64,000 nt of DNA from Selaginella moellendorffii. Lineage: Eukaryota; Plantae; Lycopodiophyta. This document shows positions 60,601 through 61,512 of this stretch, one piece after another (the first letter of the stretch is position 1; each line of letters starts with the position of its first letter). Under the pieces are notes generated by a model. That model was not told where the DNA came from. It searched no databases and saw only the letters and a list, made by a program, of their open reading frames with translations. The DNA lies in the NCBI RefSeq assembly GCF_000143415.4, contig NW_003314322.1, positions 683,430 to 747,429 of the forward strand, in the 5' to 3' direction. The position numbers and the translations under genes are program-made.

Positions 60601-60811
60601 CCATGAGAACATCGGCCACAGTCCTGCCCGACATCTCTAGAGCGTTTCAATGAGGCAAATCTCTAGAAAGCTGCGAGAGAATTTACGTGTAGTGTCGGAG
60701 ACGATTCAGCGATGGGAGAGCTCGGATCGATGGCGCTGCTGCTGCGACGAACAGGCGGCCCTGTAAACACGCTCGCAGTGTCGCTGTGGACGCCGATCGC
60801 GCCACGAGCAT
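57632..60811 (-). CDS. LIG1: DNA ligase I, multi-exon; alternative starts at 60811 (presequence) and 60634
   Basis: PMLAKPTKG, active site [11 protein letters not shown]|[52 protein letters not shown]; stop at 57632. Confidence 0.96.
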
Positions 60812-60879
60812 TCTAAAACCCTAATCTACTAAACCCTACAAGATGGAAGCTTTCTTTTTCTTTTTTCCCGCCATAGCCG

Positions 60880-61201
60880 CTATTTTACTCCCTGTGAGTG
60901 TTCTTCCATGGGCTGGGGCTGCGCTACCGCCGCCACTCCTCCAGCTTCTTCTTGCTGCTCCAGCGCTCGTTTGTACCATCGATTCATCGAAAAGATTGTC
61001 TGGATCAAACAAATCAATTGATCAAAGCAGCCATGGAATGAGAGGGAGGCCTGAGAGGGGGAGAGAGAGAGAGTCTAGGGCATATAGACAATCGAGAATT
61101 TCGACACGAAGAGAGAAGAGGTAGCTTAGCTGGATTACCTGAATGCCGGCAGCCCAGGCGAGGAGCACCGCCACTCCGACAGTGCGCTGATCAAACTTCA
61201 T
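60880..61201 (-). CDS. Putative 60-aa single-TM microprotein B (exons 61201-61139, 60999-60880)
   Basis: MKFDQRTVGVAVLLAWAAGIQ|TIFSMNRWYKRALEQQEEAGGVAAVAQPQPMEEHSQGVK*; CAG|GTAATC donor, TCCAG acceptor; same architecture as gene A. Confidence 0.55.
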
Positions 61202-61270
61202 TCACGCCTAGGGTTTATGGCTCGGTCGAAGAGGTTTTTAGCAAAAAAACGAGACAACACTAGCTAAGAT

Positions 61271-61512
61271 CTAGAACTCCTCCTCCAGATCGTCGCCAAG
61301 CCTCTCTTCTCTGATCGGCGCTGCTGGAATTTGCTCCACCTCGTCCACTCTCCCAAACTTCTCATTGAACCCGGGCTGCCGCTTGAGCCAAGACATATGC
61401 GCCTACAAACGAAGAAAAGAAAGAGGTCTCTTGCCTCTAAATCATCTTCGCAAACCTGTAACGCGGCAGCCCAGATGATGAGAACAGTAGCCGCGATCGC
61501 TCTCTTGTTCAT
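61271..61512 (-). CDS. Putative 62-aa single-TM microprotein A (exons 61512-61456, 61402-61271)
   Basis: MNKRAIAATVLIIWAAALQ|AHMSWLKRQPGFNEKFGRVDEVEQIPAAPIREERLGDDLEEEF*; 53-nt GT-AG intron with a pyrimidine tract. Confidence 0.7.

Follow-up and report, generated by a model that had tools for sequence, protein, structure and literature searches.

In the window analyzed here, the whole 64,000-nt stretch of Selaginella moellendorffii DNA, the DNA ligase I gene (LIG1) is closely preceded by two minus-strand, two-exon ORFs (A and B). ORF B is probably a real membrane microprotein gene that is expressed and has two exons, and ORF A is an intact, coding-like paralogue of B whose protein expression is unproven. 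In the reading that we prefer, to which we give a probability of roughly 0.5, A, B and LIG1 are separate, tightly packed, overlapping transcription units.

Structure of the two ORFs

The first exon of ORF A (61456–61512, minus strand; 57 nt, 19 codons) starts at the ATG at 61512 and encodes MNKR and a hydrophobic segment ending in WAAALQ. A putative 53-nt intron (61403–61455, minus strand; GT..AG, GTTTGC..TTGTAG, phase 0) separates it from exon 2 (61271–61402, minus strand; 43 codons and a stop), which encodes W-L-K-R and an acidic tail. In ORF B, exon 1 (61139–61201, minus strand; 63 nt, 21 codons, ATG at 61201) encodes a hydrophobic segment ending in WAAGIQ, followed by a 139-nt intron (61000–61138, minus strand; GT..AG, GTAATC..ATCCAG, phase 0) that is spliced in RNA contigs, and by exon 2 (60880–60999, minus strand; 39 codons and a stop) with W-Y-K-R and an acidic/Ala-rich tail. 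The joined products have 62 aa (A) and 60 aa (B), in agreement with the first-pass annotation, which had spliced two ORFs of ~60 aa by eye at these coordinates. Since the lengths of both first exons are multiples of three, both introns are of phase 0 and lie right after the Q of W-A-A-x-x-Q. This motif, the phase-0 intron behind its Q, the W-x-K-R motif and the acidic tail had all been described before and are present in both A and B.

Each peptide consists of a short basic N-terminus, a hydrophobic stretch, W-x-K-R and then an acidic tail, with 21 mostly hydrophobic residues between an Arg on one side and a Lys or Arg on the other. The predicted hydrophobic helix crosses the exon junction. 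B would accordingly be a 60-residue single-pass membrane microprotein, its basic N-terminus and helix followed by W-x-K-R at the membrane interface and by an acidic tail in solution, and the layout of A and B would suit a small signal-anchored protein that is a subunit or regulator of a membrane complex in an organelle or the ER. The B intron, which has a CT-rich run, is 2–3 times as long as the LIG1 introns (47–67 nt), and an Rfam scan of 60300–62300 returned nothing, leaving the B intron without a family match.

RNA evidence for B and A

The RNA contigs came from four runs (X1, X2, X5 and X10) of four studies, labelled as probable RNA. Since these runs lack every LIG1 intron, they are RNA. 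The contigs show presence, not absence, and transcript starts, transcript ends and single molecules are unreadable from them. In all four runs the B intron is removed exactly as predicted (joint 60999>61139, CT..AC on the plus strand) and B exon 1 is covered, so B is spliced and transcribed. The two introns of the first-pass annotation fared differently in this respect: the joint across 61000–61138 was found in four runs, and none was found across 61403–61455 in the contigs of X1, X2 and X5, all three of the runs that cover the A intron, where the intron is retained. The earlier proposal of two unannotated microprotein genes holds for B, which is expressed, spliced as predicted and coding-like, and only partly for A, which has an intact, coding-like frame without RNA support.

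Contig pieces run unbroken from 61139 to 61484 (X1, X5) or to 61502 (X2), and the A ATG at 61512 is uncovered, as the contigs end at 61484 or, in X2, at 61502 followed by an Illumina adapter. This X2 end fits a nearby RNA 5’ end. The missing spliced form of A is weak evidence because its junction would lie only about 55–65 nt from the RNA end, where assemblers may clip a short branch. The X10 contig stops at 61381, one base short of a variant site at which X5 carries a synonymous change (61382 C>T, Lys26 of A). A second variant, 60936 C>G in X2, replaces Val43 of B by Leu (V43L).

Upstream of A lies an RNA-free stretch from 61503 to 62286 (about 785 nt), with a depth of 0 in the bins 61575–62242 in all four runs, and this is the sole RNA-free, promoter-sized gap. 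At its edge, 42 nt before the A ATG, a TATA-like AATATATT (61549–61556, minus strand) is a putative promoter element that would put the A start site around 61520. At the next gene upstream (stop near 62292; 62287–62400 of the window), 58–77 loose letters precede 62287 in the contigs; they are absent from the window and may derive from a paralogue or the other haplotype.

Paralogy and coding signal

A and B are, judged by their sequences, true paralogues from an old tandem duplication. Local alignment of the joined peptides gives a BLOSUM62 score of 63, compared with 22.6±4.5 for shuffled sequences (0 of 2000 shuffles reached 63), which places the paralogy claimed in the first-pass annotation above chance. 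Exon 1 contributes most of this signal (z 7.3; 0 of 5000 shuffles as high), and the similarity of exon 2 by itself is marginal (z 2.6; 112 of 5000 shuffles as high). Identity by codon position decreases from the second to the first to the third position, and pN is 0.41 vs a saturated pS of 0.68, while the introns and spacers of A and B are unalignable; together these point to an old duplication maintained in frame. By codon-usage scoring trained on the LIG1 exons of the same window, the proposed frame scores best in all four exons of A and B, with 39.2 bits for A (1.5 and 12.6 in the other frames) and 28.0 bits for B (11.6 and 12.5). A exon 2 by itself reaches 27.4 bits vs 1.0 and 14.5. Similarity, intron position and phase, substitution pattern and codon usage of A and B are thus those expected of tandem paralogous coding genes, with exon 2 on its own marginal.

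The same region could instead be a transcribed leader or an upstream non-coding RNA of LIG1 with a 5’UTR intron, A and B having arisen as ORFs by chance within a GC-rich module of duplicated DNA that carries telo-box and site-II-like elements. ORFs of 33–47 codons are common in the other frames of the leader, the A intron is unspliced in contigs, the exon-wise database searches gave no homologue, and the A-B similarity of exon 2 is marginal. Furthermore, the first exons of A and B hold an identical 10-mer, TGGGCTGCCG, which includes a site-II-like TGGGCT, so that part of the A-B likeness could be a cis-element. We nevertheless regard a non-coding origin as improbable, for exon 1 is more similar as protein (z 7.3) than as DNA (z about 5), the proposed frame is the best one in every exon, identity is lowest at third positions, and A and B have in common both the phase and position of the intron and the 21-residue spacing of the flanking basic residues. 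A further alternative is that A and B are precursors of secreted peptides, with a signal peptide cleaved at AAA|LQ in A and AAG|IQ in B and the acidic remainder of about 40 residues being the secreted propeptide or peptide. A basic n-region followed by a hydrophobic core, with small residues at -1 and -3, is compatible with this, as is the size of A and B, which is typical of plant small secreted peptides. In secreted-peptide families, however, conservation lies in the mature peptide at the C-terminus, whereas in A and B the hydrophobic segment and W-x-K-R are the most conserved and the C-terminus is not conserved; with no Cys pairs, no known peptide motif and no Pfam hit, we consider secretion very unlikely.

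Search for related proteins

The database queries were single exons, so that the conserved exon junction was unspanned; the joined peptides were used in local scripts only, for the comparison of A with B, a scan of the window and the codon statistics. Queried exon by exon, B has no matching protein among 5.8 billion database proteins, and word searches with exon 2 of B and with exon 2 of A gave no candidates. In the PDB, exon-wise queries of A and B returned nothing; the ESM Atlas, searched with A exon 2, gave scores of 0.86 or less and no family; and an exact look-up of five genomic ORFs found none on record. The exon-wise Pfam scan at E<=10 returned only a sub-threshold mitoregulin match, to B exon 1. 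Since no homologue of A or B was found in these exon-wise searches, cross-species conservation does not back the coding assignment. A conserved-peptide uORF (CPuORF) would have its peptide maintained between species in the leader of one and the same main ORF, and the protein databases returned no such relative.

Two sets of candidates were set aside. A HMMER search with B exon 2 against 1.84 billion representatives gave three matches, two to TPR-type proteins and one to another tandem-repeat protein, which have a WY(K/Q)(K/R)-AL-E-like motif in common and were rejected as chance. In the window, a weak tblastn match to B (52013–52324, E 1.9), considered as a third paralogue, belongs to a larger gene with several exons, whose product it anchors in the membrane at the N-terminus. 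Because an unrelated membrane anchor also matches B weakly, helix-only matches are untrustworthy. The next exon of this 52-kb gene (minus strand) reads like what we take to be a glycosyltransferase/O-fucosyltransferase-type motif, and a telo-box (52421–52428, minus strand) precedes its first exon.

LIG1 and its boundaries

The LIG1 gene (57632–60634, minus strand) has its ATG at 60634, its stop at 57632–57634 and introns of 47–67 nt. Its identity is given by PDB matches to DNA ligase 1 (E 8e-17), and its structure by fifteen GT..AG joints in the RNA contigs; a search with the first exon of LIG1 returned distant fragments only. The ATG at 60811, which the first-pass annotation had taken for the LIG1 upstream ATG, opens a closed ORF of 42 codons instead. 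This presequence-like ORF (MLVARSAS...; 60683–60811, minus strand) is unspliced in the contig pieces shown and is closed by a TAA at 60685–60683, with a TGA further on; the 60811 ATG and the LIG1 ATG share a frame, which these two stop codons interrupt in the RNA contigs. The LIG1 ORF itself starts at the conserved ATG at 60634, 245 nt after the B stop, so the 68-nt figure overstates the crowding at this boundary. A hypothetical 63-nt intron (60686–60624, GTAAAT..CAG, with a good donor) would fuse the 60811 ORF to LIG1 and delete the ATG at 60634. This splice was not seen in the contig pieces shown; hypothetically, it would let alternative splicing produce a ligase isoform for an organelle.

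On the other side of LIG1, the distance from its stop to the TOM2A ATG at 57484 is 147 nt, as stated earlier. About 20 nt separate the start of the LIG1 contig at 57577 (X10) from the end of the TOM2A contig at 57555 (X2); X5 bridges this boundary, and at least two other runs (X2, X10) have a break there. Near-abutting units and bridging contigs therefore occur between two undoubted genes, and units that nearly abut or overlap are evidently normal in this region. In the TOM2A region (56312–57544, minus strand), one frame is open for 410 codons, though the gene evidently has introns.

One message or separate transcription units

The RNA is continuous over the whole A-B-LIG1 block. A single contig path leads from 61484 or 61502 through spliced B and 60370 to all LIG1 exons in X1, X2 and X5, and from 61381 in X10; the contig piece 60370–60999 is continuous in all four runs, and no contig break was found at either spacer in the four runs. 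Because X5 also bridges LIG1 and TOM2A, this continuity is no proof of a single mRNA.

Both spacers have the lengths given in the first-pass annotation, and the telo-box-like motifs reported from them were found at 61209 and at 60816 and 60831. The A-B spacer (61202–61270, minus strand; 69 nt from the A stop to the B ATG) has a telo-box, AAACCCTA, at 61209–61216, 7 nt before the B ATG. The spacer between the B stop and the 60811 ATG (60812–60879, minus strand; 68 nt) has two inverted telo-boxes (60816–60823 and 60831–60838) and an A-rich run, and a TATA-like TAAAATAG overlaps the B stop. The window holds 7 copies of AAACCCTA vs 1.4 expected, and the three at 61209, 60816 and 60831 stand 7, 4 and 19 nt, respectively, before the B and 60811 ATGs. 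In Arabidopsis, telo-boxes lie at or just after the transcription starts of proliferation-linked genes. As for translation, the long form of the RNA has nine AUGs ahead of the LIG1 AUG. The 248 nt from the B start to 60811 contain 4 AUGs vs 3.9 expected, i.e. no AUG depletion, and a purine stands at -3 of A, B and both LIG1 starts (60811 and 60634), being G for A and B. Neither of the marks of an algal-type polycistron, a weak Kozak context at ORF 1 and AUG depletion before ORF 2, is found at this locus.

The main competitor to separate units is a shared mRNA that starts near 61.5 kb and is the functional LIG1 mRNA or a major isoform of it, and in which B, possibly joined by A or by a 41-codon remnant of A, is a translated upstream cistron or uORF, either in a bicistronic or tricistronic message of a land plant or as a coding uORF that throttles LIG1 translation. 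The one contig path from the A region through spliced B to all LIG1 exons (X1, X2 and X5, and X10 from 61381) argues for it, as does the RNA coverage, which is unbroken between the ORFs and has its only gap upstream of A. That the contigs are unbroken at both spacers but broken at the LIG1-TOM2A boundary (X2, X10) counts directly against separate units. Contigs, however, merge overlapping transcripts, as the X5 bridge to TOM2A illustrates; the nine AUGs, the lack of AUG depletion and the lack of a weak Kozak at A and B are unlike the characterised algal bicistrons; and telo-boxes stand directly before the B and 60811 ATGs. Since the AUG load, the absence of a weak Kozak, the position and enrichment of the telo-boxes and the near-abutting LIG1-TOM2A boundary all speak for separate units, we favor these, at even odds, over the shared mRNA, which appears rather unlikely, and over the non-coding leader discussed above, which seems less likely still. 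It is likewise improbable that B, possibly with A, shares its translated, mature mRNA with LIG1, as a spliced bicistronic or tricistronic nuclear message of a vascular plant. Of the operon-like chain that the first-pass annotation had proposed, the unbroken RNA contigs over A, B and LIG1 in four runs uphold the continuity, while the AUG load, Kozak contexts and telo-boxes argue against a translated polycistron, which makes the operon-like reading the less likely one on sequence grounds. Among the three options it had offered for the 69-nt spacing (polycistrony, spliced uORFs on a LIG1 mRNA, or promoters inside the upstream gene), sequence features favor promoters in the upstream gene or the spacer.

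With separate units, A and B would head a continuously transcribed A-B-LIG1 block in a very compact genome. The core promoter and 5’UTR of each downstream gene, with telo-boxes and TATA-like elements, would lie in the 68–69-nt spacer and the 3’ end of the preceding gene, and the 3’UTR of the upstream gene would extend into the next gene. LIG1 would then be translated from a shorter mRNA that starts near 60.85 kb and not from the long A-B-LIG1 RNA. We infer the separate promoters, as well as the translation and membrane insertion of A and B. Counting against this reading are the retained A intron, the uncovered A ATG, the marginal exon 2 and the lack of a homologue.

Translation of B would mean that a lycophyte proteome has a further, unannotated family of membrane microproteins, and the locus would then exemplify how gene finders miss two-exon smORFs. 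The locus as a whole is a clean test case of whether genes 70 nt apart in a compact plant genome have nested promoters or form polycistrons of the green-algal type. Should the shared mRNA be true, a membrane microprotein would be encoded on one message together with an enzyme of replication and repair.

Comparison with known systems

Mitoregulin, a 56-aa vertebrate mitochondrial membrane microprotein, resembles A and B in size, N-terminal helix and basic juxtamembrane stretch. The mitoregulin family profile (MTLN, PF22002) matches B exon 1 with 13.8–14.1 bits (E 0.044–0.054), which is below the gathering cutoff of 27 bits, and residues 4–20 of B exon 1 align with profile positions 5–21; A exon 1, A exon 2 and B exon 2 have no match to this profile at E<=10. 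The mitoregulin layout of about 56 aa, with one N-terminal TM helix and then a basic stretch, fits A (62 aa) and B (60 aa), in both of which R-(21 residues)-K/R is followed by W-x-K-R.

The start region of LIG1 can be compared with that of Arabidopsis, where nuclear and mitochondrial forms of LIG1 arise from two in-frame AUGs, according to the passage of PMC3457046 that cites Sunderland et al. (2006). As in that description, there is an upstream AUG, at 60811, which starts a presequence-like peptide and has the same frame as the main AUG at 60634. Unlike the arrangement described there, two stops lie between the AUGs here, and only the hypothetical 63-nt intron (60686–60624) would join the two frames.

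In green-algal bicistronic nuclear genes, ORF 1 has a weak Kozak context and ORF 2 is preceded by few AUGs (PMC11291117). They are like this locus in that a small membrane-protein ORF stands ahead of a larger ORF at an inter-ORF distance under 100 nt, and unlike it in that a purine stands at -3 of all the starts here and AUGs are as frequent as expected by chance (4 vs 3.9).

Drosophila sloth1 and sloth2 (human SMIM4 and C12orf73/BRAWNIN) are tandem, distantly similar paralogous peptides on one strand (PMC9681215). They lie 5 nt apart, in contrast to the 69 nt between A and B, and leaky scanning on one transcript was tested as their mode of translation (PMC9681215). The sloth2/BRAWNIN and SMIM4 families are absent from the Pfam matches at E<=10 of every exon of A and B in the exon-wise scan, and, in a further difference, the expression of A is unproven here and a shared mRNA hypothetical. 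In their arrangement as tandem paralogues, each of about 60–80 aa with a single TM helix and long missed by annotation, sloth1 and sloth2 are like A and B.
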